Positions 5,972-52,942 of a DNA stretch of 64,000 bases are shown here, one piece after another. The stretch's first letter is position 1. The number at the start of each line of letters is the position of its first letter. The stretch lies in contig NW_027558470.1 in NCBI RefSeq assembly GCF_052425735.1, forward strand, positions 1 to 64,000, read 5' to 3'. This stretch comes from Oculina patagonica (taxonomy: Eukaryota). The notes under the pieces are model-generated. The model was given only the letters and a program-made list of their open reading frames with translations, was not told the origin of the DNA and ran no database searches. Position numbers and translations under genes: made by a program.

Positions 5972-6042
5972 TACTTACTAACTAACTTACTTACTTACTT
6001 ACTTACTCACTCACTCACTCACTCACTCACTCACTCACTCAC
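5972..6042. repeat. Compound tetranucleotide microsatellite (TTAC)n(TCAC)n
   Basis: Read directly; it ends where the GTCCCCACA-rich block begins. Confidence 0.95.
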
Positions 6043-6676
6043 TTGTGTGGGTTGACAAACCTATATTTATGGGGACTTCTGTCTACACACAGGCCTCACT
6101 TGTGGGGACAGTTAGAATTGTGGGGACATTTTGAGGTCCCCACAAAAAAAATTGGTCTTTGTCCCGAAAAAAATAAATATTTCTCCCAGCTGTTATTCGC
6201 AATTTAAAGTAACACCTTTGGGAATACAAGAGGTGTGTGGACTAAGTAGACATAACTCCCTTTTAGGCTTTTATTTCGATATTTCCAAGGTCCCCACAAG
6301 TCACTGGATGTTGATTTCAGTCAGGCACATTTGTGGGGACTCTCACACAGGTTGACTTTGCCAAAGTAGGTTTATGGGGACGTAGATGTATTATCACTAA
6401 AATTTTACCGAATTTTTTTCTCAGGAACATAAAAGCATTTCGACAGCTAGAAGTAACAAGTATTTGGTACTTTGGGAACGAAATCGTCATTATTTGTGAG
6501 AGTCCCCACAATACTAGTATGAAGTTTATCAGCAGGTCCCACAATGGTATCATGGAACAGCTCAGGGCTCTCGTAAAGTCTATAAAGAACATAAGCTCAT
6601 TTTCATAGCAAGTACATGTATTTAGTACTTGGGAGAAATGAAATGAAATTCTCATTATTTCTGGCAGTCCCCACAA
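6043..6676. repeat. Cluster of GTCCCCACA/TGTGGGGAC motifs in both orientations; candidate transposon terminus
   Basis: Exact or near copies at ~6069, 6101, 6119, 6136, 6236, 6289, 6332, 6375, 6502, 6536, 6667. Confidence 0.75.
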
Positions 6677-6855
6677 AAGGAGTGTAAACTTTTGCCATTA
6701 TCCTTGTTTGAAGATGTCATAGGGGTAACTTGGACAATATCAAGGGTGGGCATCAAAGGGTAGCGCTGTAAAAAAAAAAACAAAAAAACAGACACATCTA
6801 GCATACAATTGGTAACTTTAATTCCATTCATCATAACACAAACAGGTTCAATTGT

Positions 6856-9668: not shown

Positions 9669-9787
9669 GGCAGTAATACCTTTGTCCACAATTTGTGGCA
9701 AAGAAATGTTTGGAGCTACTTTTTTATAAAATTTTAGAAATGACTGAAATTTCCGTATGGACAAAAACTTAACAAAGAAATGAGCTT

Positions 9788-9990: not shown

Positions 9991-10043
9991 TAATAACTAT
10001 CACCTTAAACGAAAAATACCAAAATTACAGTCAGGAGTTGACA

Positions 10044-10858
10044 TTAATACTCTTTATAAATTCTGAAGCTGACTTATTTGAGCGTAGAAAACGCTCATAA
10101 TGTGCTCAAGACGTTTCGACCGAGAATCTTCGGTCTTCTTCGGTTGTTATCATGGCATAAAACGGCTTTTTAACGGTTTCGCATTGTACACGCGCGCGAG
10201 TGACTAATACAAATACACGCGAACGCTGCGCGAGACTATGAACATTATGTAAGTGACTTATATACATCAGGGATGTCTATGTGTTCATTTCCCGCATTCT
10301 GGTCCCTCCGCGAATGTCACGCTTCTAGGAAAAGCCTCTTGTGGTAATCGACTGACTTGTCCAACACCGCTGCATGATTGAAATCCATATCATGGCCAAA
10401 CGTGTTCGCGTGTTGCGCGATCTTAGAGTTTTTGTCGCAAACATCAAAGAGCAGTCCGTGTTTGCGACAAAAACTCTAAGATCGCGCAACACGCGAACAC
10501 GTTTGGCCATGATATGGATTTCAATCATGCAGCGGTGTTGGACAAGTCAGTCGATTACCACAAGAGGCTTTTCCTGGAAGCGTGGCATTCGCAGAGGGAC
10601 CAGAATGCGGGAAATGAACACATAGACATCCCTGATGTATATAAGTCACTTACATAATGTTCATAGTCTCGCGCAGCGTTCGCGTGTATTTGTATTAGTC
10701 ACTCGCGCGCGCGTACAATGTGAAACCGTTAAAAAGCCGTTTTATGCCATGATAACAACCGAAGAAGACCGAAGATTCTCGGTCGAAACGTCTTGAGCAC
10801 ATTATGAGCGTTGTTTACGCTCAAATAAGTCAGCGTCAGAATTTATAAAGAGTATTAA
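10044..10858. mobile_element. Penelope-like element 3' fragments in head-to-head inverted duplication (400-bp arms, 15-nt spacer)
   Basis: Arms 10044-10443 and 10459-10858 are near-perfect reverse complements. The plus strand through the spacer and right arm reads HQRAVRVCDKNSKIAQHANTFGHDMDFNHAAVLDKSVDYHKRLFLEAWH...IPDVYKSLT* (GIY-YIG C-terminus). Hammerhead-like CCGAAGA-AGACCGA..TCGGTC-GAAACGTC at 10759-10792. Confidence 0.85.
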
Positions 10859-11946: not shown

Positions 11947-12636
11947 CTCACCATCAACATCTCATGGTTTTGTCATTGCCCTTGCATATGGCATAAGAGT
12001 GTTCCCATGGGGATGCTAAAGTTAAGCGTTTGCTTTTGTAAGACTGGCCCTCTCCCATGGTAGCTGCATGGTAACATGTCACATAATTTTGTAGTCTGTC
12101 TTACCCATAATGAAGATCACTCATGGAGAGTAAAAATTCTGTGAGTCAAATGAGTCAATGATTATGAGTCGAATGTTAAATTTGAAAATAGTGTTGCCCT
12201 TACTAATAAATGAAAGCTAACTGCAAGCAAACTAGAGTGGAACTAGCTGCAAGCAGACCTGAATAAAACTATTGGCAAGTAAACCAGAGCGGAACTATCT
12301 ACATGTACAAGCAAACTTAAGTGCAACTAACCGCAATCAAATCGGGGTTGCAGAACTAACCATAAGCAAAGTACACGTACAGTGCTTCTAAGCTAACTTG
12401 TATAAAGGGAAACTATGGTTTAATAGACAATTACCCACTTTGTGTAAAATTCACCTTGACTCACGACTCATAGAAACTTTACTCTCCATGACGAGTGGTC
12501 TTCATTATGGGAGAGACACCTACCATTGGGAGAGGGCCAGTCTTACAAAAAGCAAAAGTTTAACTTCAGCACACCCATGGAAACATTCTAATGCCATGCA
12601 AGGGCAATGACAAAACCATGAGATGTGATAGTGAGA
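11947..12636. mobile_element. Foldback/MITE nested in the CACTA element
   Basis: ~11947-12170 is the reverse complement of ~12458-12636 (CATCTCATGGTTTTGTCATTGCCCTTGCAT / ATGCAAGGGCAATGACAAAACCATGAGATG). Confidence 0.7.
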
Positions 12637-13766
12637 CCTCCCACTCATGTAGTCCATGAAGATACAGTAGTCTCACAATAGCAACTATAGCTGCAGTGTC
12701 TTTCTTTTGGTGTCATCATGTCTTTCAATTATGTACATGTTGTATTGTATGCAGAGTGATGCCTTTCCAATTTCTATTAATAAAATGGAATAAAAATAAC
12801 AATTCAGTCACAGTGTCAGATTAGATGTATGTGAGACAATTATTAACATCAACTCTATTGCTATATTATAAGAACTTTCCCCATTCATTTAAGGGACTAG
12901 GGTATGTCATGGGGGTTTTGCAGAATTTTGGTCTAAACTGTTCTGAAATTAGTGGTAGGCAACTTTACCCATGAAAACATTGTCTTTGAACATTTAACGA
13001 AAGATGTAACCTTAATTTGGGGATAGAAATCAAACTTCGGCTATAAATAGTATTTTTTTTTTAAGGCTAACGTTTGCAGTGCCATCAAAATTATGAAAAC
13101 TGTATTGTGAAGCAAAATCTTATTGCACTGCTGTACATACAGTGTATACTGTAAGTTGTATTACTAGAAGTTTGCTTAATTACCTTTAGCAGTTTCACCG
13201 TTATCTGTTTTGTTTAGACACGCTCCACATAAAATATAACACCGAAATTCTTGTAAGGGTGGCTGACAGGGGTCCTTTAAGATTTTAGTGTGTAACAAAA
13301 AGTTTTAATCAGAAACTGGACTTGCATGACACATGTGTAAAGTGTGAAATAAGAAAACGGCAATTTCCATATTGCAAAAACAATGCACTCTGGGAGAGTA
13401 AGAGTCAGAATTGAAGTGAATTTTTTATTATTCACAAATCAGTCAATTTATCACTCTCGATCTCACTGAACTTTTTGATTTTTTACTTAACCTTTTCTTG
13501 TTTCATTACTTAGATCAATCTTTTTTGTGTGGGTACATGTAAATTTGTCTAACCTCAAAAAGGGCAAAAATGTTTCTGATGATTATCAATAGTAACCGAA
13601 ATCAATCAGTGACTCAGGCTTTACAGGGATATAAAGTAATTGTAGCTAAGATTCGATTCACTATTGGTGGGTATTAGCAAAGGAAAGGTCATGGCTTGTT
13701 TTCTGCACAGCCCCAGACATTAATTATACACACAATTTTCTGACTGACTCATTCTTTTCAGGGTAA

Positions 13767-14257
13767 AGGTCTCCACAAGGACAAGATGCAGGGACATGTT
13801 GCAATTACAAGTACATGTACATGTAGCAGTGACAAATTCATGTGTTGTTTACACTGAGGGGACATGTAGTGAGGACATGGAGCAGAAAAAATTAAATCAA
13901 AATGTGTACACACACAAATAACTGTAGTGGGGACATACTCAGGGACATGTGGTAGTGACACATCCCTTTGTGTGTGTGTTGATAATTTTTGGCATGTGCA
14001 ACAGGAATTCCTGCAACAGTTTGTCCCTGCGACATGTTGCACGAAGTTCAATGAGTTGAATTCCGTTCAACATGTCACAGGGACAAAACAGCTTCAAAGA
14101 TCGTGTTGCACAAGCCAAATATGTAATCAGCGATTACATATTTGTTGTTGCTACATGTCCCACTCCACTTCCCCTCAGTGTAAACAACACATGATTTTGT
14201 CGTTTCTACATGTTGCTGCGATGTGTCCCTGCGACATGTCCCCATGTGTGGAAACCT
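13767..14257. mobile_element. PIF/Harbinger-like MITE
   Basis: Imperfect TIR AGGTCTCCACA..GGACA / TGTCCCC..TGTGGAAACCT with TAA-like flank; internal GGGACATGT repeats. Confidence 0.5.
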
Positions 14258-17144: not shown

Positions 17145-17371
17145 TTAAGATACATTCATTTGTTTTCTAGACTTCTGAATATTAAAATGTACAAAGTACT
17201 TCACTGCTTTCCAATGTCTGTCCTTTAAAGCCTTTGGATATTTCTTGATCGCTTCCTCGCATTGTTTTTTACCAGGGACTTTTCCTGTTCTGAAACAGTT
17301 TCCAAGCACATCATTAACAGCTGCTCTTTCATCCTTTGTCCAGGTTCTGCGGTTTGTGTAATTTCTTCGTT
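17145..17371 (-). CDS. Terminal exon: Myb/SANT-like helical domain
   Basis: RRTWTKDERAAVNDVLGNCFRTGKVPGKKQCEEAIKKYPKALKDRHWKAVKYFVHFNIQKSRKQMNVS*; acceptor ttgtttcctag; W..E / R.W..VK pattern; absent from the ORF track. Confidence 0.8.
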
Positions 17372-20300
17372 CTAGGAAACAAGTTACAAACTACTCTGAG
17401 TATTGCCTCTTGTAACTCTAAAAAGATTTTAATGATAAGGAACATTTACTTTTCTTTACTTGTAAAAAAGTAATGATTTCTAAAATATAAATTCAAACAT
17501 CTTTATGCGACCACCTCTCGTATGCACCTTGGCTTGTTGACATTAATTAGAAAAAAATCTATCGTCGCTTTTGGAAAATATTCGCCTGTTTTTTCAAAAA
17601 TTAATTCTTCTAATTTTCTTGGAAAGCGCTAATATCTCGTGATCTTTCATTTTGTTCGCCCTAAAGTTTAAAGCTTGAAAAAATTTGCACATTTGTTATT
17701 TCAATTACCAAAAATCAGAAAAATCAGTTTATGTTTCGATTTAGAAAAGATCACCTCCGTTCCCAAAAATAGCTGCAGGCCACCTTACGTAGTTTCCCAT
17801 TTTTTGTTATATTTTGAGCACTACTGTTATGTAAAAATTGATGAAATTTTATCTAACTTTTAACTTAGAACAGTATCCCCAATTGTTTTTATAGCGGCTA
17901 CTGCTCCTCCTCCTCCTCCTCCTCCTCCTCCTCCTCCAAGGTCAGTTTTTACACTTGAGGCCTCTACAATTTAAAAAAAAATGGAACCCATCCACTTACT
18001 TGAAGCTTTACGTCCCGATGTTTTTTGTTTCTTGATTTTCGTACATTCCGGTGACCCTGTAAGAAGAACAGCTGAATTAAATATTCATTCTAAATATGAA
18101 TAACAAATCCAACTGCCGGCTGTTTCAGTGTTAAGTTTTGCAAATCGAACAAGGCACAGGACACATTCTGAACAACAATATCAGTTATTTTTTACAGGAC
18201 TGGCTAAAGTGAAATTTTGATATAAACTTTTCCTGAAACAAATTCCTTCACTTGTCAAGTTGTTGGTCTTGAAGGTGAAGAAATCAGTAAACAGCTCGAA
18301 GGGGTTAAGTTTTTTCCCAGAGAATTCAAATCTGCCGAGCAATAGGCACTTTGCAGCTAGGCCATCACGTGACCTACTTTTCATAAAATTTATCGACTAT
18401 AACTTTAACCCTTTTACCCCCTAAGGTGAAAGGTCTTTTTTGGTAAATTTCAAAATATAAACTGGATATCCATATAAGATACACCATTTCAAAGGTGTTG
18501 ATCAGTTTATTTCAAAAAAAACACTTTAACAAATACATGTAAAACGGAAGCTATGTTTTTGAAAGAAATGGGTTAAAAGGTTAAAAAGAAAAAGATTTTA
18601 AAAATTGTTTTTCTCCGTATAGGTATACCACTAAACTATATCTTATTGTGTAGCTCTCAGTGTAGTAGTTAATTTCAGTTATATTGCATGTCACATATGC
18701 ATCAGCCCAAAAAAATTGAAAAGTTATAGGGGTGGTCAAACATGTCACAAGTAGGGGGGAGGTACAATTATTTTTGTTCAAAATGCACACCTCTAGGAGA
18801 CAAGTTGTGTGCCAAAAATTAAAATTAATTGGTCCAATATTGACCAAGTAATGACATTATCTGCCATATGGCACTCTTAGGTGATTTCTGTAGAATGTGA
18901 AACTACTCAAATGTTTAAAGCTGTAGCTGTACTGTAAATGCTGCAATGTTTTCCTTTGCCATCCATACTGGTTTTGGTGGTAAAAAAACAGCCACAAAAT
19001 CTGCATAAGTCTGATGTGAACGCTTCTCTTCCCTATTTTTTTGACATGAGTGGGGTTTCTTTGGTGTTTTCTGATCCACTTAATAGATGAAAACAGACTT
19101 TCACTTTGAACAGAACACCCATTTCATTTTGCATGCAAGATTGAACCAAGAACTACGAGTGGAAATAATCAATTCTTCTTCCGTAGGATACTTTATCATC
19201 AAGGATGTCAATTTTAAAATAACGATGGAAGCTGTCAAGAGATTTTTGAGAATTCAGCGACATTATTTGGCCGTCTGGTGAAACACATTTGTTGTTTGGA
19301 AACAGTCATTTTCCCTTTTCAATAAATCAAATAGATACAGTAGTTATATGTGTTTCATTTTAGAAATGAGAATACATGTACATACCTTTCAAAAGTGTAC
19401 CCGCTATTCTTTTTCTTTTGGTTGTTCCTTTTTTTCGGCTTACTGAGCCTGGAATAACAATGACAAATTCAAAATAAAAAGATCAAGTAAAATCAGGGTA
19501 GAAAATGTATATTATAAGCTACAACGAGATCTCACCTCGACTTTTCTTTTTATTGCTATCCACTTCTCTATCATCCATGTCAACAACATCATCCTTATCC
19601 ACGCTTGAATCTTCATCATCAACATTGTCGCTGCTGTCGTCACCACCACCACCATCATGTTTGATACCTGACTCTAAAAATCAAAAAATAATAAAATTTT
19701 CTTCTCTTAAATGTCCTGTCCCAGTCAAAATACAGTGTACAATCCCAGAGAATCATCTGTTTCAAACTGGTCTGAAGAAAGCGATTGTGATATTAATGTG
19801 TTACAGTTCAAAACGTGGAAGGCTCACCTGCAGGAATATGAGCTGTTCGTTTCTTTTTGTTCACTTGGAAGCCTGTGTACATGATATATAAAGCCTTAGT
19901 TCAATGAAATACCGAAAATGGACAGCTTTATTACTAAAAAAACTAAATGACAGGTTTTTCCTTGCTGCATAGCTAGCGAGAGAGATTAAGCACTTAATGG
20001 CTGGCCCGAGGGGAACAGTGAGTTTTATTTCCCCGAGCCTCTCAATGGGGAACATCGAGGATCGAGGGGAAACAAAACTCACTGTTTCCCAAGGGGCCAA
20101 TCATTAAGTTTTTTGTTATACCCCCAACTTTAAATAAAGCAAACTGCACCAGTGTAATACGTTGCAGTTTAATGAGGAGCCAAAACAGAGAAAAAAATTC
20201 CTGCAGACAAGTTGGACTTAAAAATTTCCTGCAGAAATAATTATTACCCCCCTTCCTGTAACTTCTTATGGTGGTGGTATGAAGATGGTATGAAGCCAAA

Positions 20301-23300
20301 CATAGGTTAAGTCTGCATACGAGCTTCGTGCCCCTTCAGGCCAGAGCTTATCCCAGTTTCTGTATCATGAAGAAACTAGAAGTATTTCTACACCCCCCCC
20401 CCCCCCTGGATGGGATGCTAGTCTATTACAGGGTTACCCCCAGCAGTAAATACACCGGTACCCATTTATACACCTGGGTGAAGCTAAACATGGCATGGAC
20501 ATATCAATAGTATACAAAGACATAATTGCAAAAATACTCTATTAAATTACAGACAATCAACAAAACGATGTTGTAACAAAAGCACTGTGAACGAGGATAT
20601 CAATACACACAATTCCTCGTTCTAAAAACACCAATTTAAAATTAAAGGAAGTATAAAGCCAAACGTAGCATGGCCATTTCCCATATGTACAATTACATCA
20701 TTACAAAAAAACTCAAGATCGTCAACTGACAAAACGTCGTCAAAACGGCGAGGAATGCCATGTGCACGCAAACGATGACATGAAGTGTATCCCTAGTTCT
20801 ATAAACACCGAAGTAGCTAACACAACTCCACTTGTTGGATCATGAATAAAATTATCGACTTGACAAATCAAACGATTCATACTATCTCTTTTTCGAATGA
20901 AATCTAGTTGACAATATTGGACAACCCTCGATCATCATCATCGATCCTTTTCCTGCTATTGGACGCATAAGGCCTCACAACCCTCGATGGCAATACCATA
21001 TTATATTGAAGGGTAGTGGTGAGAAAATAATTACATTCTGTATTGGGTGGAGTCAGGAATACCGAACACGTAATAACATTTTCAGCTTTGTCGCTAGTTA
21101 CATGAATTTTGACTTTAAGCCGCAGATTTGTTCAAAGAAACTGAAAGAAAATTCATATAGTTTATCTAAGCGAGGTTTTCCAAAGTCCTCAGTAATGACA
21201 AAACAGAAAAGCTCAACCAAAATGAGCTTTATTCAAACTAAAATCGTCCTGAAAACATGCCAAGCACGTGCTGTGAATTGTTAAATGACTGTTTTGAAGT
21301 AATTCCAAACAGTAACCTGCTTTTCTTCATCTTTATTAAGCTCCCTTTTACATTGTACAGTAAAAGATGCTCGAACTGTGGAAACGGCAAGAGATTAAGA
21401 TTACTGCCATTTTTTTTGCAGAAACGTTATTATTTTCGATGCGTATTTGAGCGGACACCAATTCAGTACAACGATGTCAATTTCAATCTTACAACTAATC
21501 TCAAGCCTGAAAAGTGAGACAGAAATACATACACCTTATTCGATGGTTTAATATATAATACGCGCGGATATTTTGCGAGTTGCGTAGTATTTCAATACTT
21601 TCAATAGCATCTCTGCCATGGAAAATAATATGAGCAATGAGCAAAATGTCCGCGCGTATTATATGTTAAACCATCGAATAAGGGATTTATTATTCCACTA
21701 ATTTTTCCACTTTGTTTGGGCCAGTATTCCGCAAGTTTGTTCGCCCGTCTTTTTGCCCTGTTTTACTGTGTAATAACGTGGCATATTTTGCGCGTTCTTT
21801 TGCCCTTATATGGTAAAATGGCACAATAGTGGAATAATAACATGAAATATTGACAGTTCACGCATAAGCAAAACTATAAGAAGATTGTGATGCAAATAAG
21901 AATACACTAAATACCATCAGGAGGTGTCCCTGCTGTCCTTTTCCCTTTCTTTGTTCCTTTTCTTTGGCTCAGTGAGCCTGCAAAATAATGAAGAATTTTG
22001 ACTTTGCACCATTTTTCTTGCCTTGCATAGATCTAGTGTCGATCTTTGTTTTTTGAGTCCATTGTAATAAGCAGCCAGCTTTAGTTAGGAACACTAACTT
22101 TCAATAGCATTTCTGCCATGGAAAATAATATGAGCAATGAGCAAAATATCCGCGCGTATTATATGTTAAACCATCGAATAAGGGATTTATTACTCCACTA
22201 ATTTTTCCACTTTGTTTGGGCCAGTATTCCGCAAGTTTGTCCGCCCGTATTTTTGCCGTTTTACTGTGTAATAACGTGGCATATTTTGCGCGTTCTTATA
22301 AGGCAAAATGGCGCAATAGTGGAATAATAACATGAAATATTGACAGTTCACGCATAAGCAAAACTATAAGAAGATTGTGATGCAAATAAGAATACACTAA
22401 ATACCATCAGGAGGTGTCCCTGCTGTCCTTTTCCCTTTCTTTGTTCCTTTTCTTTGGCTCAGTGAGCCTGCAAAATAATGAAGAATTTTGACTTTGCACC
22501 ATTTTTCTTGCCTTGCATAGTTCTAGTGTTGATCTTTGTTTTTTGAGTCCATTGTAATAAGCAGCCAGCTTTAGTTAGTAACACTAACTTTCAATAGCAT
22601 TTCTGCCATGGAAACAAAGAGTCTGGCTCTTGTAATTGCTTGAATTTCAATGCAATGGGGACTTGCTATTTAATAAACTTCGCAGCCTCCCACAGAGCGT
22701 ATGCTCTTTTATATGTGTCATGGGGGAAGATTTATTATTTCAAACTCGCATTATTGGTCTTAACATAGACATTTTCAGCACAATCAGAGTGCATCAAGGC
22801 ATGCATCAGAGACTATCTGCCTTCAGAATACATTATGCCATAAACGTTTCTTAATTTTTGTGAATGTTATTGATCTGAGAATTAACCAGCAAAGAATTTA
22901 ATACTTACAAGTATCTACATTGCTCTCACTTCCACCATCGTCAATGGCATTGACAGACTCTAAACATAAATAAATATTTCAATTTGCCTCTCTCTCATAA
23001 TGCATACAGTGAACATTTATCATCGTCATTCCATTCTCTCTGAAAGTGCAATAATTCAGTTGCTGTTCAACATGAAAGTGATGCTTTATATGCATGTTAT
23101 TTATTTTTTAGATATTTAGTTTCTACCCCAGCCTGAGAAATGTGGCTGATTTGTCTACTGAAGAAACGCTTTGCACTCTTTTAATTACATGGCCAACAAT
23201 TAGGCAATGGCATATTAAAGTTAGCTTATTCTTAAGATACCAAATCTAAAATGTGTGGTTCCAGAAAATGTCCATAATCCACCCACATAAGGGATGGGAA

Positions 23301-29931: not shown

Positions 29932-29968
<37 letters not shown>

Positions 29969-30528: not shown

Positions 30529-30559
<31 letters not shown>

Positions 30560-34820: not shown

Positions 34821-34855
<35 letters not shown>

Positions 34856-37800: not shown

Positions 37801-40800
37801 ATTTTAAATTGAAGTTTTCAACCAAGATAACAAAAATAGCGATATGTGCATAGAGTTGTTTGTGACAGTGTCTTGTAAAGGCGCAGGAACTGAGAGAGAT
37901 CACACAAGTTAGTTCAGTATTGGTTTATTTTAAATTGAAGTTTTCAACCAAGATAACAAAAATAGCGATATGTGCATAGAGTTGTTTGTGACAGTGTCTT
38001 GTAAAGGCGCAGGAACTGAGAGAGATCACACAAGTTAGTTCAGTATTGGTTTATTTTAAATTGAAGTTTTCAACCAAGATAACAAAAATAGCGATATGTG
38101 CATAGAGTTGTTTGTAACAGTGTCTTGTAAAGGCAGAGGAGCTGGGAGAGATAACACAAGTAAGTTTTCAGTATTGGTTTATTTTTAATTAAAATTTTTA
38201 ACCAAGATAACATAAATTAGTGGGTACGTGCATATAACACTTGCCTTTAGAAGTGATGGAATTCTCACCAGAGTTGTTTGTGACAGTGTCTTGTAAAGGC
38301 ACAGGAACTGAAAGAGATCACACAAGTTAGTTTTCAGTATTGGACTATTTTTAATTCGTTTTTTAACCAAGAATATAACATAAATTAGCAGTATGTGCAT
38401 ATACTAGTTGTACCTATCAGTACGTGCCAACAAGCGAAATACTCTTTGTTCATAAGAACAGATACTGAATGGTTTTCAATAAACTATATTTGTTTGAAAT
38501 GACCAAATTATGGTAAATTGTATTTTAGGTAACATGCGAAAAAAGTGCTATTATTTTCTCTGGTTTTCGAATGGTGGCCCCAGTTGAGTTCGTTTCACTG
38601 TAACAGTGAGCCGCGTGGACGCCATTTTGGTAATTTGCTCTTTAGCAAGGAGTGAGAGACTGGGAGCCAGTTGGGAAGAACAATACAACCCAAATATGGG
38701 GTTTACTTACACCCAAATATGGTTAAAAAATAGTCCCTTACGCACAATTTGAGATTTTTTTCAGTTATACACCCACGGCTCTATGATTCCGCTGCTGAGT
38801 CAGCCTCGCCTCTTGGCTCGGCTGCCTCATTGGCAATAACTTGCCTTTAGCAGTGATGGAATGCTCATCAGGGTTGTTTGTGACAGTGTCTTGTAAAGGC
38901 GCAGGAACTGAGAGAGATCACACAAGTTAGTTTTCAGTATTGCTTTATTTTTAATTGAAGTTTTTTAAACTTGAGATGACATAAATTAGCGGTATGTGCA
39001 TACAGTATGTAACTTGCCTTTAGCAGTGATGGAATGCTCATGAGAGTTGTTTGTGACAGTGTCTTGTAAAGGGGCAGCAGCTGAAAGAGATCGCACAAGA
39101 AAGTTTTCAGTATTGCATTATTATTAATGCAAGTGTTTAACCAAGAAAACATAAATAAACAGTATATGTGCATATGTAACTTGCCTTTAGCAGTGATGGA
39201 ATGCTCATCAGAGTTGTTTGTGACAGTGTCTTGTAAAGGCGCAGGAACTGAGAGAGATCACACGAGTTAGTTTTCAGTATTGCTTTATTTTTAATTGAAG
39301 TTTTTAAACTTGAGATGACATAAACTAGCAGTATGTGCATATGTAACTTGCCTTTAGCAGTGATGGAATGCTCATCAGAGTTGTTTGTGACAGTGTCTTG
39401 TAAAGGGGCAGCAGCTGAAAGAGATCGCACAAGAAAGTTTTCAGTATTGCATTATTATTAATGCAAGTGTTTAACCAAGAAAACATAAATAAACAGTATA
39501 TGTGCATATGTAACTTGCCTTTAGCAGTGATGGAATGCTCATCAGAGTTGTTTGTGACAGTGTCTTGTAAAGGCGCAGGAACTGAGAGAGATCACACAAG
39601 TTAGTTTTCAGTATTGCTTTATTTTTAATTGAAGTTTTTAAACTTGAGATGACATAAACTAGCAGTATGTGCATATGTAACTTGCCTTTAGCAGTGTCTT
39701 GTAAAGGCCTTTTGCGGCTAGTGCCAGTTCCTTTTGGATCAGGAATGTCTCAAGGACGTTTCAAAAACGAAATAAGCGCCCCCTTAAAATTAGCACCCCC
39801 CTCTCACCTTAGCAAATTAAGTGCCCAGGCACTATTTCAAGCATTTATGGCAATTAGCTCTATGAACTATATGTCTTGATCAAGAATCGTATACCTTTTT
39901 GGTTACGCCATGGAAGTCCTTGTACACCATAATCATAGCGTAACTCCTCACCAACTGCAATATCCTTAAGTGCATAGAGGGCCAAGTAAATCTTTGGACC
40001 TTCTTTAATTTTTCTCATAGCACAATTCGCCTTTCTTGATGGAGTATCATTAACCAGTCTCCCCAGTCCACTCGAAAATGAAGCATCCAAACTGTAAAAT
40101 CACAGCAATTTACATGTAGCATGTCAGAGCACAATAATACCAGAAACATGGCTATCATAAAAATGACATTATGGTGTTTAAACGTCCTTAAGGAAGCCAA
40201 TGTTCAATTTTTGCCAAAATACACCATTGATAATGATAAAAATTAATATGACCAAATTTTAACTTTTTACCCGTCACTTAGTCACAAAGGTTACCATAGC
40301 AACCATTGACGTTTTCTTTTGTTCTCAAACAAGCTTGATTTTCTCGAAATCTACATTGACTCTTGGTATTCATTTTTTGATATCTTCAAGTATAGTAGAT
40401 TGACTAACTGTACACAAAATTTTAGGAAAATCTGTAAGAGCGTTTTAGAGTAAATTAAGAATGAAGTTTTTGGTATTTTCTTATAATTTCCTACAATCGG
40501 TAGTCGATATATTTAAACAAATTAAAGCAAAAAGTCTTTCGCTTTTAATTAATGGTCTTTAATGGTGTAAGTATCTCAGTGAGAGTAACTGCTCTCAAAT
40601 AACACAAAACAATTTAAAAGCGCCCATTTTATATTACCGTGATGATTCGATTAAGCGCCCTCCTTTCAATAAGCGCCCCCTTCCGAATAAGCGCCCCCCT
40701 TCGAATATGTTTTTGTCAATAAGCGCCCCTATTCCAATAAGCGCCCCCATTCTAACAAGTGCCCTCATTCTTATAAGTGCCCCTATTCTAATAAACGCCC

Positions 40801-43800
40801 CCTATTGTGGATAACTCCCTAGTGAAGTCATCTACTTTATAAGTTGATAAACGCATTAACATTTACCATACCGTACATGTATGTATATAATTACTGCTAA
40901 ATTGAACAATTCTTTTAAAAGTAGCTGAACTTGCAACACTTTACTGCTGTTACAGTTTCTGTTATTGTTAGTTATCTTAATATTTATTAAAGTTTTGTTT
41001 TGAACATTTGGTTATTTCTCGAAAAATTTAATTAGCGCCCTGTCGCGAATAAGCGCCCTATCTCGATTAAGCGCCCTCCCTTGAGGTGCAAAAAGTAAAT
41101 AAGCGCCCCGGCGCTAAATCGAATCATTACGGTAAATTGGGGTTTTTCTGAAAGTTTCATTCTTGATTTACTTGAAAGCGCTCTAACAGACTTTTCTACA
41201 ATTTCGTCAACATATAGTCAATCTACTAAACTTTAAAATATCAAAAATAAAAACCAAGGGTCAATCTAGATTCCAAGTAAATCAAGCTTGTTTAAGAACA
41301 AAAGAAAACGTCAATTGTTGCTATGATAACCTAGAGTTTGTGACTTAGTGAAGGGTAAAAAAATTAAAATTTGATCATATTTCATCATTATGGTGTATTT
41401 TGGCAAAAATCGAACATTGGCTTCCTAGATAATTTTAATTTTCAAAACAATTCACCCTTCGGCCAAAAAAACTACATCGATCAGCCTCCTTAAAATAAAG
41501 CCTGTTACTATCAGGTGCATGAAGCAGGCCCATAAGATGAACTCATTTTATGACTCATTTTCATGTGGTCAGAGTACAAAAAAATATGTGCGAAATGAGC
41601 ACAAAATTAATATCACATGATTATATGAATTATTTTGTTCTCCACAGGACATGCTTACAGTGTGATCACTGTAAGCAAAGTTATTTTGACTGGTCCTACA
41701 CGCTCACCTTAAACTCACTAAACATTGAAACGTAAATATTTTTATGGTATTTGTTGACAGGTATTTCTTCATTTAACACAGTTTTTCCATGGATTTTTGT
41801 GTGAAAACAAGAACATGTGCGTTGCTTAGTAACCAGGCATTCGATCGGAAGCAAAAATTGGACTGGGGCGAGAACGAACTGAAACAAAACAACATGCATT
41901 CTCACCTCCAATTAGCCCTTTTGTTTCTCTTAGCCGACTTGGCACGAGAAAACGGAGGGCTCTGGGGACATAGGATTTTTGAATTTATTTGAATTTTTTT
42001 GATTGGCTGTTTGGAACAAAGAATTCCTAAATGGAAGTCGAAAACGTAACAACTCTCTCATACATTCATTTGAAATGTCATGACTGCATACATGAAGACC
42101 GGAAGTCCTAGAATCTAGGACTGGAAATCCTGTGTCCCCAGAGCCCTTCGTTTCCTCGTGCCAAGGCTCAGCCGGCTAAGAGAAACGAAAGGGCTATGCG
42201 GGTGAGAATGAACAAGATGGAGGCATTTGGGTTTCGTGGCTATCCTATCGATAAAAAGAGATTTGGTAGTCATCAGTTGGAGATAAACTTGTTACATTAA
42301 GAGAGTTTCGTAAGTAGTTCTGCTAATTTGCCATCAAAGTGCTAAATGGGGAAGAAACAGAAGGCAATAGTTTGCATCTACCATACGAATACTCGTGTTT
42401 TTTTTCTCACTCGTGGTGTATCAATATTTATTCTGTTGAAAATATAGGCCATCGTCGACACTGCAAACAGTTTTTTGGGGCTGTCAAACTTGCAAAAGCA
42501 ATGACCAATACTCCCTTGTAGTTGAATTAAATATTAATTTGCATACCTTTCCATAAAAGTGTCAATTCACGAAAATTTTTGGCACCATTTCCAAATGTTC
42601 CCGCAGATAAGCTGCACCCTCGATTTCGAGGGAAGATGTTGGGAAAAAAAGGTGCGGCTTATCTGCGGGTTTTTCACGGAAATAAAAAGTAGAGAGATGC
42701 CTGGAATAAAAATTATTTTTTACCCCATGCTGATGTTTGAGTGAATTTTAAGTATGTGTTCCCAAGCTTATGCTTTACAGCATAGTCAAAGATGCTTGTA
42801 GAAAGTACTATTACTACCATTACAAAAAAAATTAAAAAGAATGACTTGAATACCACAATGACTTGCATCCATCCTGAAAGAAGAAGAGGAAGTTTCCCAC
42901 ATCTGGTGAATAGTTATCTTCTCTTTGGCATCCTTCCTCATATGAGATCAACTCTCCTTTGTATTCAAGTAAAAAGTCATTTTTCAAAAATGGCCTCGCT
43001 GTAAACACACCTCTCCCTGTAAAGATCACACAGTAAAGGTCATTCCCTTAAAATTATTTCAACATGTATACCCCTTGTGTTAAATCCAGTTTTGTTTGAT
43101 GAAAAGGTACAAGGGTACATATTCTTTATAAGGGTATGTTACCATTGTATATCATGGGCTCATAAACTCTGTTACAGCCCGTTTTTGATATATATACAGT
43201 ACTGTGCAAAAGTAATGCAAACAAAATTTGTTGACATTCATAACTTTTCGTGGCTTTTCGACAAAAAAATTGCAATATTTCGCTCAAAGCGAATTTGCGG
43301 CGAAAAAGTGGCCTTTTTCGCTTGGCCTATTGTGTAAAATGTCGTGAAATTTCGCGCAATAATTCGCTTGCTTCGAAATTGACTTGGAAAAATTCGTGTG
43401 AAAATTTGCTCTGTTCGAAATACTCCCTACAAAATTTTCTGCATTCAAATGTCTTTTGGCCTTTCTTAAAGCTATAGCTTTGCCCTGCTTCATGACTATA
43501 AAGTATGACTCTTTGAGGTGCTGCTATTCAAACGAAAAGACGATGACCATTGTTTTATGACAAATCGTTTTATTTTACTTTAAGCATTACCGGAGAAAGC
43601 CTTTAAAACTCGACCAAGCAATTAGCCCCCTACCCCAGTCTGTGATTCAAAGACAAAACTTGATTCCTCTTTTTCTCTGTTTAAGTGGCAAAGTTTATAC
43701 TCTTCTTTTCGATCGCACAAAAAAAATATACAGTAAAATTCCGGTTATAAGCCCTGGGCTTATACAACGTCATAAGGGTTTTTGGGCTTATATCCTGGAG

Positions 43801-46800: not shown

Positions 46801-49800
46801 ACATAGGAATACGGATACCGTCACTGTTTTATTTTTAATGGCTTGAGATCAATATTATCTAAAACAGAAAAAGGAAGATATCGATGGCGAGTCGCGAAGG
46901 AAAGGGGAAATAACATTAACCTAAACTTACATTATTATCGATAACAATGCACGCCAAAACAAACAAAGATTAGATAGCTCACCTTTGCAATCTAATCAAG
47001 ATACTGCCATCGGTTGGCCTTTTTATACTAGAACGGTCTCAAAAGTTATGACACTAAACGGTTTTCACTCGTCAAATTCTTATCGCATATGCCGATTTTG
47101 ATGAATACACGTACAACGGTTAAAAAGTTCTGTAAGCAGTACATCATTCTCTCCTGACCCCATACCTCCGTTCCACTGTAGAAATCAAACGCGTTTTGCA
47201 TGATGTACGCTATGTTGATTCATAATCATGACAATCAAAGATGGCATACCGAAACTGAGTAAACAATCAAAGTGCATAGTTCCCAGTGCTACCCGGTTGG
47301 AGTAATCGTAACATTGCCCGTCCACGGGCGACAACATATAGGCGTCACCACCTAATTACACTCAAATCACTGCCCCAATTCTGCAATACAATAATGTATT
47401 TATAGTAAAACGAACTCAACCGGGCCACCCAACGTTTTTTAGCCAATCACAAGACAAGTTCAAAACAAAAGAATTGGAAGGGCAATTTTAACTCTTCTCT
47501 TGACTAGATTCGGTGCGAAGGCATGCTAAAGTGTTGTTTTTACGACAAAAAATATAATTTTGTTCAGTTCGTTAACGGAATGAATGAAAGTCTGCCGGTA
47601 ATTTGGAACATTGGATGGAATCAACGTAAATAAGTTTACCAAATGACGGCCGGGAATTTTGAAGACTGAACGGACTCAACGAAAACTTACCGAATCATGG
47701 CCTGGAATGAAGACAAAACGGACTCAACATAAATTCGTTTACCGAACTGACACGGCCTTTTCTTACATTTAGATAATTTTAGAGACTTACAAATTTCTTA
47801 TCTTGTACTTTTGTTGTGGTACGGAAAAAGCAAGTGGCATTTTCGAGGAGAGTGTACCGGAGATCACTCAAATGTAACACATGCCATCAAAATAATCTGA
47901 TTTGAAATGTTGAAATTTGTCCCGCAAAATTTGTGATATTAGCCCAGTTTTGAGAATTATAATAAACAAGGATCTTTTGAATGAAATGTTGGGTCTTTTC
48001 TATTGTCTGTTGTTTCCAGTTAGGGCCTTTAAAAAAAATGATTTTGATCCCCCGGGCAGAAGGGGGGATCAAAATTTTTTGCCATCCGTCGGGGGGGGGG
48101 GGGGGGGTGTATTTTTTCTGGAATAACCCAATGCTCTAGACACATGAACACATTGCGGAACTATGTGTTACGTTAGCTCAATGTATTGTTATACTGTATT
48201 AGAAAGCAGGGAGGGCAAGGGTTTAACAAACGGGCAGGTACGCACATTATCTTTTTTCCCCTCTTATGTGTTTTTTCATCCTTCCTTCTCCCCTCCCAAG
48301 GCATGGCATATTCCCTCACATGATTTAATTCCAATTTGCAAAGCCAAGACTGTATTTAATCCTGCAGCATGAAATTTGCCAACAAATGACTAAAATTCTG
48401 GAAATACTTGACCTTTAAATTGTATTCCTTGACACTATGTATTCTCTTCAGGAAGTTAATTTCCAGGTTTCTGATAGGTATGAAAAATATGTGTAATTAT
48501 ATATAATGAATATGACAAATATAATGATTGTATTTTTTTTAAAAAATAGGTTCAGTTCTTTTATCTGTAAATTTGAATGACACATAGACAACAAAGGTCA
48601 AAGTACATGAATAACTGAACACATGTAGCAAGAAAGACAACTTTATGGACCATGACTTTTAAGACTAAAATTTTATAGTCATAAGGATGCATGCTCTTGA
48701 CATAGCTGATAACTATCTCATCACTATTTCACTGAGTTTTACATTTGCCAACATTAATTTTCATCAGTTATGCATTGGTCAGCAGAATTACAAAAAAAGT
48801 TTACGACCCACCGACTGGAACGTTTGAGCGAAAAAATTACTAAAAAATATATTCATTTGTGAACACCTTTCCAAATAAAAAGCTGGTGATAAATTGTCTA
48901 CAATGTAGTACGTTTTGTAGTTGTACTGAGCAAATTATGTAAGATATATTATTATAATTTACAAGGGGCAGTCTTTGATACTTTGAATTCAACATTATTG
49001 TTGCTAAACACACTTTGACTTAACGGAATGGAAAAAAATCATGACTTCTTTTAAAGATGCTAGTGTAAATTAGTGCCAAAACTTCTCTTTCTATGGAAAA
49101 AATGTTTTTCAGTCTGTTCTTTCTTTATGAATGTTCATTATTGTCAGGTTGTTAAATCTCTCTAACATCACTGTTGAGTGAAAATATGTTTTTATTCTTC
49201 ATGCGGGGGAAACTGAACGATCGTTCACCAAATGCACTTGTTACTAGATTTACCAATTTAAGCTTGCAAACCATGATTACATGTTGTTACTTAAATTATC
49301 CTTTACAAACTAAATAGAAACTTAATTTCTACTACAGTAGGTTCAAATCAGCTTAGTGAGAGGTAAATTTTTCAATTTTCAAAGGATGTGCCAAGTGATC
49401 AACATGTACTTGATTAAGTGATTATTGATAACAAAGTTTTAGAAATTGCAATTAAAAGTCGCTCAAACGTTCCAGTTGTGACGTCAAAAAGTGCACAAAA
49501 TTTAGAGAAGGTATTCCTTATGACTATAAAATTTTAGTCTTAAAAGTCATGGTCCATAAAGTTGTCTTTCTTGCTACATGTGTTCAGTTATTCATGTACT
49601 TGGACCTTTGTTGTCTATGTGTCATTCAAATTTACAGATAAAAGAACTGAACCTATTTTTTTTAAAAATACAATCGTTATATTTGTCATATGCATTATAT
49701 ATAATTACACATATTTTTCATACCTATCAGAAACCTGGAAATTAACTTCCTGAAGAGAATACATAGTGTCAAGGAATACAATTTAAAGGTCAAGTATTTC

Positions 49801-51413
49801 CAGAATTTGTAGTAAATAATAAAGATGGTAGATTTTAAGCTCGGTGATAAACAGTGAAGAAATTATTCTACATGACACGAGCGTGGGACAAAGAAAAAAA
49901 TCTGAGTCCCCGACGGGAATCGAACCCATGGCCTCCCAGATACTGGTTGGGCGCTCTAACCAACTGAGCTACGTAAGACTCGCTGTGAGCTAGGCCATTT
50001 ACTAGGTTGATAAGTGACACGCGTCCTGCATACTGCTAGGATCAGCAATGTCGAAATCATCAAATTTGTAGTAAATAATAAAGACGGTAGATTTTAAGCT
50101 CGGTGATAAATAGTGAAGAAATTATTCTACATGACACGAGCGTGGGACAAAGAAAAAAATCTGAGTCCCCGACGGGAATCGAACCCATGGCCTCCCAGAT
50201 ACCGGTTGGGCGCTCTAACCAACTGAGCTACGTGAGACTCGCTGTGAGCTAGGCCATTTACTAGGTTGATACGAATTTTAGTCATTTGTTGGCAAATTTC
50301 ATGCTGCAGGATTAAATACAGTCTTGGCTTTGCAAATTGGAATTAAATCATGTGAGGGAATATGCCATGCCATGTCAGAATATATAGAGAGACTGACAGT
50401 TATTAGTAACAATCACTTGCACACATTTCAAGTCCTGCAGTTTATTTCCTTGTGGAGGTTAAAGGGACTATGTCACCCAAATTTATATTTGTGTCACAGG
50501 AAACCTAAAAATAATAGTCCATTTTTATTAAAACTTGGTATATTAGAGCACTTAAACTGTTAACGAGCATCTTTGGCTGCCGATGGCTCCGATGGAAACA
50601 GGCCATGAATATGCCATAGAAAGACCATGAAAATCAATGATAAAATCATTGGGTTTTAAAGTAGGATATTCATTTTGCTTGTGTGCCTTCCCCTACCCCA
50701 TAAAAAAAGGTGGAGAACCATTGAATATTGAGGGTTAACTTTCACGAGCCATGAATTCATAGGCCATAGGAAGACCATGAAAATTCCATCAATTTACCAT
50801 AAATAAAATCAACAAATATACATGAGCTCTGGTTTCTTTGGGTACATGTTGAAGAAATGAATAAATTCTAAAAAATGTGGAAATTGCATATATTATTGAA
50901 ATTCCATGATTTTTTTTATTTGTACTCAATCGAATCAGGAGCCCAAAAGCGAGTGGCAATTTTCATAACCTGTTGAATGAATGTCAATTGTGTGCAACCC
51001 CAGTGCACCCTTTATATTACTCCACATTGTTCAATTCTAACTATTCAAATCATGACTGGCATCTTAAAAGCTCTTTGACATTCCGTGACAGAATGAAGCG
51101 TACCTTTGATCATTTGATGCATTCCTAGCATGTACAAATGAGTTGCCTATTGAATTTTTTTTATGAAAACAAGCAAAACCAGTATTGAAGTGTGTTGACA
51201 ATTCACATGTAGGCCTGACACACCCCTAACAAATTTCAAAACTAACTTTTCGCATGGAAAACTCAAATCAAAGAAAAATCAAGAGATATTCATTACTTTC
51301 TTTTGAGCAATAGATAATGCTTTCTGAATACCATAAGAGAACTAAGGACTACAAAAAGCAACCTTTATAAAATGTATACTCACAGACTGCAAGCATCTTT
51401 TCCTCCCTGCCAT
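17145..51413 (-). CDS. Multi-exon SET-domain / tyrosine-recombinase fusion protein (Crypton-like), 1234 aa (1381 aa with the GC-donor exon array)
   Basis: Hand-spliced GT-AG exons with matching phases: 51384-51413, 46059-46137, 42854-43016, 39895-40091, 36853-37053, 36162-36221, 32003-32041, 31079-31218, 30487-30685, 27786-29049, 25478-25950, 25026-25067, 24360-24410, 23841-23903, 23567-23608, 22909-22959, 22405-22467, 21915-21977, 19536-19673, 19386-19448, 18000-18056, 17145-17371 = 3705 nt with no internal stop. Junctions rebuild conserved motifs (DKYI-GRGVF, KSLC-LDAS, LIKR-LDMVEIKGKRG). The small linker exons are less certain than the domain exons. Confidence 0.8.
18409..18580. mobile_element. 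Short piggyBac-like MITE
   Basis: TTAA|CCCTTTTACCCC ... GGGTTAAAAGG|TTAA, imperfect TIR. Confidence 0.45.
20305..20482 (-). mobile_element. Truncated SINE body
   Basis: CCCCTGGATGGGATGCTAGTC...GGTTACCCCCAGCA...GGTACCCATTTATACACCTGGGTG resembles a common cnidarian SINE central domain (recognised from memory). Confidence 0.5.
21598..22614. repeat. ~500-bp tandem duplication carrying a 63-nt exon
   Basis: CTTTCAATAGCAT(C/T)TCTGCCATGGAAA at 21598, 22098 and 22588; units nearly identical. Confidence 0.9.
22218..25110. repeat. ~1.44-kb tandem duplication carrying three exons
   Basis: 22218-23651 repeats as 23652-25110; junction GGAGTATTC|GGGCCAGTATTCC. Confidence 0.9.
25478..29049 (-). CDS. Tyrosine recombinase region (exons 27786-29049 and 25478-25950)
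   Basis: Zn fingers CFYC..HLENCH and CPYC..HAKKC. Catalytic set: R (FNKRRGGE), K (KGKRGRKV), xxxR (TKLRKY), H (HLGH), Y (RDFYRL). Confidence 0.9.
25978..26502. mobile_element. Tc1/mariner-type MITE in the YR intron
   Basis: TA|CTGTATTTACTTGAATAAGCGCCGC ... GCGGCGTTTATTCGAGTAAATACGG|TA. Confidence 0.8.
26863..27070. repeat. ~45-bp tandem repeat (AACGGGCGACCAAGTCGTTCGAACGAGTGGA)
   Basis: Four to five degenerate units. Confidence 0.75.
29500..29910 (-). pseudogene. Decayed Penelope-like GIY-YIG endonuclease fragment
   Basis: Minus strand has CAGCGWCYVGETSQCFETRKKEH and RKTLEAWHT...NNNSKPIPNQY in different frames; next to (AAT)n at 29911-29968. Confidence 0.75.
33081..33954. repeat. 435-bp near-perfect tandem duplication (intronic)
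   Basis: 33081-33515 repeats at 33516-33950 with ATGT microhomology at the junctions. Confidence 0.9.
36329..36804. mobile_element. Tc1/mariner-type MITE
   Basis: TA|CAGTAGAACCCCTATTAAGTGGCCACC ... GGTGGCCAGTTAATGGGGGTTCTACTG|TA. Confidence 0.8.
36853..37053 (-). CDS. Cys8 zinc-finger exon of the SET-YR gene
   Basis: CYTC-x8-CIKC-x4-C-x4-C-...-CKNC; phase-1 symmetric exon of 201 nt. Confidence 0.7.
37390..39750 (-). repeat. Minisatellite (~167-bp full and ~126-bp deleted units) whose full units contain a 63-nt candidate exon
   Basis: Full exons at 37701-37763, 38245-38307, 38845-38907, 39018-39080, 39185-39247, 39352-39414, 39519-39581; four shorter units lack the donor half. Confidence 0.85.
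37512..37616. mobile_element. Tiny TA-flanked MITE
   Basis: TA|CCGTAAAAACCCGCAGATAAGCCGCACC ... GGTGCGGCTTATCCACGGGTATTTACGG|TA. Confidence 0.75.
39895..46137 (-). CDS. SET domain (PR-Set7/KMT5A-like), exons 46059-46137, 42854-43016, 39895-40091
   Basis: GRGVFT..F.KNDFLLEYKGELI...FLFFF...CLDA...LGRLVND...N...LYALKDIAVGEELRYDYG..LPWR. Confidence 0.9.
40192..41425. mobile_element. Kolobok-like long-TIR element with nested TA MITE (40637-41132)
   Basis: TTAA|GGAAGCCAATGTTCAATTTTTGCCAAAATACACCA matched by TGGTGTATTTTGGCAAAAATCGAACATTGGCTTCC; arms ~250 bp. Nested CCGTGATGATTCGATT / AATCGAATCATTACGG with ATAAGCGCCC repeats. Confidence 0.7.
41897..42210. mobile_element. Mutator-like MITE
   Basis: ~85-bp TIRs CATTCTCACC... 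/ ...GGTGAGAATG; 9-bp TSD AACAACATG / AACAAGATG (1 mismatch). Confidence 0.75.
43197..44888. mobile_element. Non-autonomous Tc1-like element with nested MITE (~43731-44026)
   Basis: TA|CAGTACTGTGCAAAAGTAATGCAAACAAAATT ... AATTTTGTTTGCACTACTTTTGCACAGTACTG|TA. Confidence 0.85.
48300..50371. mobile_element. Foldback element with ~390-bp near-identical inverted arms; right arm split by a SINE
   Basis: 48300-48687 is the reverse complement of 49515-49808 joined to 50273-50371. Confidence 0.85.
49809..50272 (-). mobile_element. Tandem dimer of a tRNA-derived SINE-like unit (~259 bp)
   Basis: tRNA-like heads at 49904-49981 and 50163-50240 with A box TAGCTCAGTTGG, B box GGTTCGATTCC and acceptor-like stem GAGTC../..GACTC; TSD GAATTT (49803-49808, 50273-50278). 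Confidence 0.8.
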
Positions 51414-52365
51414 TCCCTGGCCAAAACTGAAGTTTCACAAGATTGAAGCTAGGTACAAACAATACCAAGAATTAATACAAGCATCCAAATTTAAGGTTGA
51501 ATTCACATCATGCAGCAAAAGAAGGGTTCAATACCTTCAGCAGGTACTGCACCGACTTGCACTGTCACACTGTACAATCTGAAACACTCCCCCAAGATAT
51601 ATGTGATATGGAAAACAAATAGAGCCTTCCAAATATGGGAGGAATACACCCACACTCTCATTAGTCATTGGTTGTTGATGAGAAAAGTTTTTTTGGGCTT
51701 GCTGTGTAATATTCTATTTCCATTCCTGAATACCTGTCCTGTCCCAAATATTCAAATTCTTCATGTTAGAAACAAAAAAGAAAATTTAAGACATAAAAAC
51801 TGACAAACTGGCAAACATGTATAATAGCTAATGTCCATTTCTTAGCTAATCATTTTTCTTATCAACTCTCAGAAAATACATATATAGTTCCATGAATCTA
51901 CTAACTCATGGAATACAAAAGTGCTGTATCCTTTTTCTTGAATTCCGTGGTGAAGGTGGAATTTTAAAAACATGCTGTCCCCACAATTAAACAGGAAGAG
52001 ACACTAATGGGTTGCTATTATATGCCGCAAGTTAAATATATGTACAACATTGTATAACTTCCATTCAGTAACATAAAAGGCTTTAATTTAACATGTAATG
52101 GCTTGTGTTTCCACTGCTGTTTATTTACTATTTAAACTCCAAGTTAAGAGTAACTATACAAAGCTAATGACTTCATTAAACTTCCTCATAATTGCTTTAC
52201 ACAAATGCTTTCGAGTCTCCACTATAAAATGCACACAAATGACTCACTAATTGAAAGGTCAGTGGTTAATTTATAACAATTCCTACAAACAGCCTTGAGG
52301 CTATAATTCCATTTTTGCCAATAAAAGCCGCTACATCTTAAAAATAAAGTATACTGTAGCTGGTC

Positions 52366-52813: not shown

Positions 52814-52845
<32 letters not shown>

Positions 52846-52850: not shown

Positions 52851-52942
52851 GTTAGCTATGTTCGCATTGGCAAAAACCACCACAAGACCATTTTCAGTTG
52901 TTAAAAATACATTTTATTGATTAACAAACAAAGTTTTTTTTT

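Follow-up and report, generated by a model that had tools for sequence, protein, structure and literature searches.

A candidate Crypton-type tyrosine recombinase element of Oculina patagonica, enlarged by nested repeats and ending at a microsatellite

The first 64,000 nucleotides of contig NW_027558470.1 of Oculina patagonica (RefSeq assembly GCF_052425735.1, forward strand; hereafter the window) contain an interval of 37-46 kb in which a tyrosine recombinase (YR) gene, two exons encoding a SET domain, a small intronless open reading frame (ORF219) and a block of short repeated motifs (the site block) occur together. We interpret this interval, with moderate confidence, as an old, low-copy Crypton-type YR element or gene cluster that has been swollen by nested repeats. 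Under this interpretation, the element's own parts would be the two SET exons, a three-exon YR gene, ORF219 and the ~700-bp block, all read on the minus strand and amounting to a few kilobases in total. Position 6050 would be the 3' end of the element, abutting a TG-type microsatellite, and the remainder of the 37-46 kb would consist of long introns and spacers filled with nested repeats, arrays and lineage-specific insertions. The unit would have been inherited as a block in the sister genome described below, its YR core being kept by selection. An earlier note, written from the letters of the window alone, had read positions 5972-52365 as a giant microsatellite-targeting YR transposon with cargo, an animal analogue of the fungal Starships.

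Animal Cryptons are uncommon and little understood, and next to nothing is known of the cis-acting sites they use. The locus supplies a concrete candidate for such a site, namely a 9-bp half-site present about ten times together with one 10-8-10 palindrome (10-bp arms around an 8-bp spacer), found beside YR genes whose products are ~42-44% identical. In addition, an intact, selected YR accompanied by SET and a small partner may mark a distinct Crypton lineage or an active recombinase recruited by the host. The features on which these statements are based are listed in Table 1.

Table 1. Features of the locus and its surroundings in the window
Feature	Position	Strand	Remarks
Microsatellite, (TTAC)n(TCAC)n then TTGTGTG	5961-6049	.	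Tandem Repeats Finder (TRF) and sequence; directly adjoins the block end
Site block, ~700 bp	6050-6740	+	GTCCCCACA copies in both orientations; outer end sharp at 6050
Block sub-unit	6050-6448	+	Solo 388-bp counterpart in YR intron 1 (L001 11887-12274), 87% identity
Perfect palindrome, arms TTGTGGGGAC / GTCCCCACAA, 10-8-10	6118-6145	.	Candidate lox-like core site
ORF219, intronless, 219 aa	6856-7515	-	Five-member, lineage-restricted family
YR C-terminal exon	17145-17371	-	Canonical acceptor, in phase with exon B, contains the stop codon; tblastn and splice context
YR exon B	25478-25950	-	Catalytic K, R, H, H, H, Y present; canonical acceptor and donor; dN/dS 0.12
YR exon A	27786-29161	-	Zinc-finger-like N-terminal part, helical domain, first catalytic R; dN/dS 0.19
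Cys-rich open piece between SET and YR	36749-37075	-	Open in the sister genome too; exon status uncertain
SET C-terminal half	39863-40099	-	Pfam SET positions 50-105
SET N-terminal half	42835-43047	-	Pfam SET positions 1-42
Polinton/Maverick-like neighbour, not part of the element	52366-64000	-	ORF run; extends past the window edge

The recombinase gene and its SET and ORF219 partners

Two minus-strand ORFs (27776-29119 and 25404-26039) belong to a protein family of 124 relatives (E <= 0.001), the named members of which come from corals (Acropora, Montipora and Paramuricea), beetles, a bivalve and fishes. By tblastn, full-length relatives align with the window in three places, at ~29.1-27.79, ~26.0-25.48 and ~17.37-17.15 kb, which correspond to exon A, exon B and the C-terminal exon. 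The junctions are canonical (GT/AG), and their phases (2+1 and 1+2) hold the frame. The same three-exon layout, C-terminal exon included, is present in a Tara Pacific coral locus (L011/L012) and in another locus (L054/L055). The 5' bound given for exon A is the opening of its reading frame, the acceptor being unmapped; because this frame has no ATG ahead of the conserved zinc-finger-like motif, an upstream exon is needed for the start of the gene.

In an alignment of 20 family sequences, the residues R, K, R, H and Y are invariant and in the usual order, and all of them are found in exons A and B of the window. An AlphaFold model of the relative P0032 (predicted local distance difference test score, pLDDT, 74.6) has as its best fold matches in the PDB XerH, XerD, Cre, XerA, the Tn1549 integrase, lambda integrase and topoisomerase IB. 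On the basis of the catalytic residues and this predicted fold, we accept the gene as encoding a tyrosine recombinase. No reverse transcriptase domain was detected in the family proteins or in the scanned ORFs of the window.

The nearest relatives of the locus are held in ENA assembly ERZ25067872 (the sister genome), on contigs ctg21019 (2.46 Mb) and ctg19669; a further assembly, GCA_044670265.1 (L003), is 99.6-99.7% identical to the window and therefore represents the same species. The ratios of nonsynonymous to synonymous substitution (dN/dS) against the sister contig (Table 1) indicate that exons A and B are under purifying selection. Only one YR copy is recorded per assembly.

Both SET halves match the Pfam SET family barely above the curated cut-off. 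The motif ELRYDY is present, and the usual N-H is replaced by N-D; because 131 of the ~140 closest relatives share N-D, we count this replacement as a trait of the family rather than a local defect. When the C-terminal half was searched against 1.84 billion representative proteins, 994 matches were obtained (relatives P0147-P0296 among them), and one of these, the sea cucumber protein P0147, contains eight tandem copies of this half-domain. The company of SET and YR, remarked on in the earlier note, recurs outside the window: the two lie in SET-then-YR order on one strand here, and four long fish gene models, from Phyllopteryx, Syngnathoides, Antennarius and Eleginops, contain repeated units of this order. 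The Syngnathoides model also matches the C-terminal piece of YR.

ORF219 is the intronless ORF that had been noticed beside the block. Its family has conserved Cys/His residues and a conserved C-terminal motif; the protein has no Pfam match, and its AlphaFold model (pLDDT 35) is too poor for use. The dN/dS against the sister genome (0.73) indicates weak constraint. The sister relative, P0142 (82% identity), shares contig ctg21019 with the YR ORF P0121.

The site block, its linkage to YR genes and its sharp end

The earlier note's (TTAC)n(TCAC)n tract touching a block of motifs was borne out: TRF calls a period-4 array at 5961-6044, and the sequence reads (TTAC)n(TCAC)n, then TTGTGTG, then GGTTGAC. 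The block is 86% identical in the sister genome. Exact copies of GTCCCCACA number nine in the 64-kb window versus 0.27 expected, a count reached in none of 100 shuffles, and seven of the nine fall in 6101-6675, on either strand. When one mismatch is allowed, 10 copies (7 exact and 3 with one mismatch) are found in 6068-6675, and an indel variant lies beside them near 6537, in agreement with the ~11 motifs in both orientations that had been counted previously. Outside the block, one-mismatch copies are near background (12 matches, with ~8 expected across the entire window). The palindrome consists of two motif copies separated by an 8-bp spacer and is the lone such site in the window in a scan allowing up to one mismatch per arm and spacers of 5-11 bp; the same scan of 100 shuffled windows yielded none. 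It is kept in L006, L010, L021 and the L001 copy, and is degenerate in L054, in the copy starting at 15312.

The block recurs in the company of YR genes, as expected from the earlier proposal that the two are linked. On ctg21019 (L001), a solo copy of its first part is inserted in YR intron 1 and has the same terminal base as the main block. The window represents the empty site for this copy (27584-27587), with a two-base difference and no target-site duplication. A degenerate piece of the block, ~90 bp in length, is also present in the last intron of the sister YR gene. Two further lineages, whose YR proteins are ~42-44% identical to that of the window, have block-like sequences within or next to their YR genes. 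In L011/L012 (42%), motifs resembling GTCCCCACAA are clustered 4.5 kb 3' of the last YR exon, shortly before both scaffolds end; the cluster's match of 25 of 28 positions to 6136-6163 in L011 scores 41, compared with 22.5 ± 2.2 (maximum 31) for shuffles of the sub-region and a mean of 26.2 (maximum 33) for shuffles of the whole locus. In L054/L055, the top whole-locus match to the first 257 bp of the block is in the last YR intron and starts exactly at the palindrome (L054 15312-15600; score 49 versus a shuffle maximum of 39), and a second block-like copy (19732-19899) follows the YR gene at a distance of 2.9 kb.

In a third related sample, a stretch of one strand (L008 2986-12487) carries the C-terminal exon, exon B twice, pieces of exon A and pieces of ORF219, one of which is immediately followed by a block fragment, as well as two fuller copies of ORF219. 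This appears to be a graveyard of broken copies of the same element family and points to past activity. The C-terminal exon and an ORF219 piece are only ~0.7 kb apart there, and the ancestral unit appears to have been compact. Because ORF219 travels with YR and block fragments in this locus, it looks like a gene of the element; more generally, ORF219 and the block can be regarded as parts of the YR unit, not cargo, because they co-occur with YR in other loci.

Since the block is linked to YR genes across distant lineages and contains a lox-like palindrome, it is reasonable to regard the 9-mers as putative recombinase-binding sites, which is how the earlier note had explained them. The palindrome resembles the sites of Cre/loxP, Flp/FRT and Xer/dif in having 10-bp inverted arms around an 8-bp spacer, and the predicted fold of the recombinase matches Xer and Cre. 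Unlike in those systems, the palindrome sits 75 bp inward of the element end (6050), and the sites of the locus are putative; the many extra half-sites are more like the arm-type sites of integrases than like Cre, Flp or Xer cores. We infer that recombinase subunits would bind half-sites of 9-10 bp, and that the palindrome would act as a lox/FRT-like core, and perhaps hold the crossover point, with the other half-sites as accessory sites. Recombination may then excise and integrate DNA without target-site duplication, via short homology to TG-rich repeats. Any current movement would be equally conjectural.

Other identities and relatives of the block were considered. A Helitron, CACTA, hAT or short interspersed nuclear element (SINE) identity was rejected, as no fitting termini, terminal inverted repeats, target-site duplications or tRNA-like head are present at the block. 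A protein search with a spurious ORF spanning the block, aimed at further block copies, gave no match, and the 32 loci picked up in JGI metagenome contigs by a conserved block 18-mer are all chance matches. Four one-mismatch GTCCCCACA copies occur within 400 bp of a lineage-specific insertion at 13528-13934; alignment of this cluster (13.5-13.9 kb) to the block stays within shuffle scores, and it was not retained as a relative.

The outer end of the block is sharp. Collinearity of the window with ctg21019 and ctg19669 halts exactly at 6044-6050. On ctg21019, the block ends with GTCAACC and is followed by (CA)n(CATA)n and then by 16.5 kb unlike window 1-5972. Contig ctg19669 matches ctg21019 at 99.78% identity over the 11.86 kb that lead up to this block-end base, past which ctg19669 has 18 bp of CA-rich repeat, a long interspersed nuclear element (LINE) and at least 14 kb unrelated to both other flanks. 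Tracts of the (GT)n/(GTAT)n type are found at the same junction in related contigs. Because collinearity halts exactly at the block end in three contexts, 6050 is likely a true element end; the earlier note had placed this end at 6043, and the agreement of the solo copy, which stops at the same base, favours that view. Its idea of microsatellite targeting stood only in part: the block end does abut a microsatellite in the window, ctg21019 and ctg19669, but the three represent one shared ancestral TG junction, and no microsatellite adjoins the L001 solo copy or the L011 and L054 blocks. The two sister contigs may be haplotypes that received complex insertions at a fragile microsatellite, as their divergence of 0.22%, similar to the 0.25-0.45% that separates two assemblies of the species of the window, would allow; alternatively, they may be two places of one large unit.

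Pfam searches with ORFs of the ctg21019 and ctg19669 flanks were uninformative save for an esterase-like ORF of the LINE. This LINE (L005 12337-15521 / L021 6779-10101) carries an endonuclease-reverse transcriptase ORF, the sole reverse transcriptase encountered and separate from the element, and an esterase-like (GDSL) ORF1. Its 3' end sits on the short CA-rich repeat at the block end, and it may be a microsatellite-targeting element of the non-long-terminal-repeat class. At the opposite side of the locus, the extra GTCCCCACA at 51977, for which chance had been allowed from the outset, is compatible with chance: alignment of 51.8-52.4 kb to the blocks does not exceed shuffle scores, and the region was rejected as a candidate second end.

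Inside the end, the order YR, ORF219, block and their strand are the same on ctg21019 over at least 34 kb. Four stretches of this contig are collinear with the window from 6044 to ~39.7 kb at 76-92% identity (19523-21263 lies between the sampled stretches). The distance from YR to ORF219 is 21 kb in the window versus 43 kb on ctg21019, and 51% of 6044-39700 aligns to the sister contig, the remainder being lineage-specific insertions and arrays. To judge from these alignments, most of the 37-46 kb is accounted for by nested repeats, tandem arrays and insertions that are lineage-specific rather than by cargo.

Crypton affinity and alternative explanations

Cryptons are DNA transposons with a tyrosine recombinase (Goodwin 2003; Kojima and Jurka 2011, PMC3212892), and the CryptonV group of Repbase, reported from cnidarians, is counted among them. 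Their traits are a YR, an optional second gene, absence of terminal inverted repeats, very low copy number and short direct repeats that reflect microhomology with the target (PMC13465315, PMC3212892). The locus agrees with them in its full YR catalytic set, its lack of reverse transcriptase and of visible terminal inverted repeats, its second gene, its introns and its very low copy number. It differs in its length, reached through nested repeats, and in having only one defined end, whereas the mark of a Crypton applied here was a direct repeat of 4-6 bp at both ends. CryptonV families are reported to insert in microsatellites (PMC8869645), and the locus end abuts one as well; this likeness is drawn from the published description, not from sequence. 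For Cryptons, the Creative Commons-licensed papers searched describe no SET upstream of YR, no ORF219 partner and no 700-bp 9-mer block with a palindrome.

Several results weigh against a Crypton-type element as we have described it. The fold matches of P0032 have modest E-values (2.7e-3 for the top match, at a probability of 1.00). Pfam assigned no family, DUF3435 and DUF3504 included, to the YR pieces of the window or to six full-length relatives, and sequence searches of the PDB with the YR piece and the family profile found no recombinase. Against the sister genome, the C-terminal exon (dN/dS 1.9, compared with L006) and the Cys-rich piece (dN/dS 3.2), each with few sites, give no sign of purifying selection. 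SET and YR are separated by 10.8 kb in the window, a single SET-YR transcript is putative, and no SET was found within 10 kb upstream of YR in L054 or within ~3 kb in L011 and L013. The orientation of the block relative to the gene in L011 and L054 is the reverse of that in the window. The flanks past the end differ in all three contexts, which would also fit a still-moving unit. Finally, the second end that the earlier note had supposed was not found within the window, where the block end has neither an inverted nor a direct partner and no direct repeat was detected.

It appears unlikely that SET-YR is instead a fixed host gene for a domesticated recombinase, with the block as a cis target or regulatory region for inversion or excision in place. 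Strong purifying selection on exons A and B between two genomes with the same gene order would suit such a gene; however, only the internal order is conserved, and the flanks past the block differ. Repeated domestication of Cryptons is documented (PMC3212892), and the resulting DUF3504 genes (such as KCTD1, KIAA1958, ZMYM2-4, QRICH1 and WOC) resemble the locus in being YR-derived and multi-exon, with internal order kept between genomes and purifying selection. These genes, however, have lost most of the catalytic tetrad (PMC3212892), whereas the YR of the locus keeps R-K-R-H-Y and has no DUF3504 match in Pfam. The single YR copy on record per assembly, the multi-exon structure with canonical splice sites common to distant relatives, the identical flanks of the Tara coral locus in at least 10 samples and an Acropora cluster formed by proteins named from three Acropora species are also what a fixed gene would give, as is a block orientation that varies by lineage, which inversion would yield. 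Set against them are the patchy distribution of the family (corals, beetles, a bivalve and fishes) and its tandem units in the fish models, which have the look of a transposon history, and the heap of broken copies in L008.

Starships are giant fungal YR transposons that carry cargo and have a DUF3435 'captain'. Movement by site-specific recombination is in principle independent of size. We consider it improbable that the locus is a counterpart of these elements, that is, a mobile interval of >40 kb that inserts at microsatellites and carries passenger DNA, and equally improbable that the stretch running from 6050 across the SET-YR gene is still mobile as a single unit of at least 40 kb. The locus resembles a Starship in combining a YR gene with a large interval that has one sharp end, and its recombinase has intact catalytic residues and is under selection. 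It differs in lacking a DUF3435 match (or any other Pfam YR family), recognised cargo and a second end in the window, in owing its length to nested repeats and in its animal host, and we therefore find the analogy unsupported. The supposed cargo fared no better: Pfam searches of the tested long ORFs of the interval recognised no such gene, ORF219 looks like a gene of the element, and about half of 6044-39700 is lineage-specific repeats. The related statement that no recognisable host gene lies in between agrees with the null Pfam result for the long ORFs tested, the coverage of which was not exhaustive.

The best evidence for a moving giant is at the end itself: collinearity with ctg21019 ends at 6044-6050 and the next 16.5 kb show no similarity, the two sister contigs are nearly identical up to that base and then unrelated for at least 14 kb, and a microsatellite is at the junction in all three contexts, as would be fitting for a relative of the CryptonV families mentioned above. 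However, only one YR ORF is on record per assembly, even in the assembly with two near-identical contigs; these contigs differ by an amount near that between same-species assemblies and may be haplotigs; and the LINE at the microsatellite in ctg19669 illustrates how insertions at a fragile repeat can explain differing flanks. If the unit did move whole, it would be the first giant YR transposon known from animals, one that ends in a cluster of lox-like sites, and the clean boundary at 6050 makes the question of mobility in very large YR-bounded animal units open to study.

It is very improbable that the block is merely the end of an unrelated non-autonomous repeat (one resembling a miniature inverted-repeat transposable element, or a retroelement tail), with SET, YR and ORF219 as separate genes: the 388-bp solo copy and the ~90-bp fragment do stand apart from the main block, the succession of a minus-strand ORF, the block and a simple-repeat tail does resemble a retroelement 3' end, and the solo copy retains the outer end without the inner part, as 5' truncation would give, but all extra copies found, from three lineages, lie in or by a YR gene or by fragments of ORF219, the block is not accompanied by a reverse transcriptase, Pfam matches nothing in ORF219, the solo copy has neither tail nor target-site duplication, and the window holds no inverted partner end.

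Repeats within the interval and the adjoining element

Several repeats of the interval were recorded. A near-perfect hairpin occupies 10044-10858 and has no counterpart in the sister contig; its two 400-nt arms show 98% complementarity and are separated by 15 nt. A likeness to Penelope-type GIY-YIG domains, suspected for coding-like pieces within the hairpin (10427-10654) and at 29419-29801, was rejected, as Pfam gave no support. A dispersed repeat of ~26-27-bp units (TRF consensus TTTGCTTGCAGTTAGCTTTCACTCCGG) is present in the flank of the window (4587-4739) and within the interval (12217-12297); repeats of this type are also found in the sister contig (L001 2173-2292 and 12777-12895; L009 9000-9119). 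The region 3' of YR exon B (21597-25110), which falls in the last intron under the three-exon model, contains 490-bp tandem repeats and a duplication of ~1.45 kb, partly common to the sister. At 37616-39806, between SET and the Cys-rich piece, units of 126 bp and 167 bp that are related to each other form large tandem arrays, which the sister contig has too (L009 18005-20008).

Upstream of the SET exons, at 48297-50374, nested inverted repeats surround a 259-bp tandem duplication, each copy of which carries a tRNA-like sequence. These sequences were detected by Rfam (tRNA, 49911-49973 and 50170-50232) and by ARAGORN (tRNA-Thr, 50163-50238) and are probably SINE heads.

At 52366-64000, the G+C content rises from ~36% to 46-51%. 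The ORFs of this region include an rve integrase with a chromodomain (61735-62886) and a weak match to a poxvirus-A32-like ATPase (55938-56648), and the region fits, by its gene content, a Polinton/Maverick-like element that is nested in or adjacent to the locus. Its near edge carries a twofold repeat of a 111-bp unit (52391-52608).

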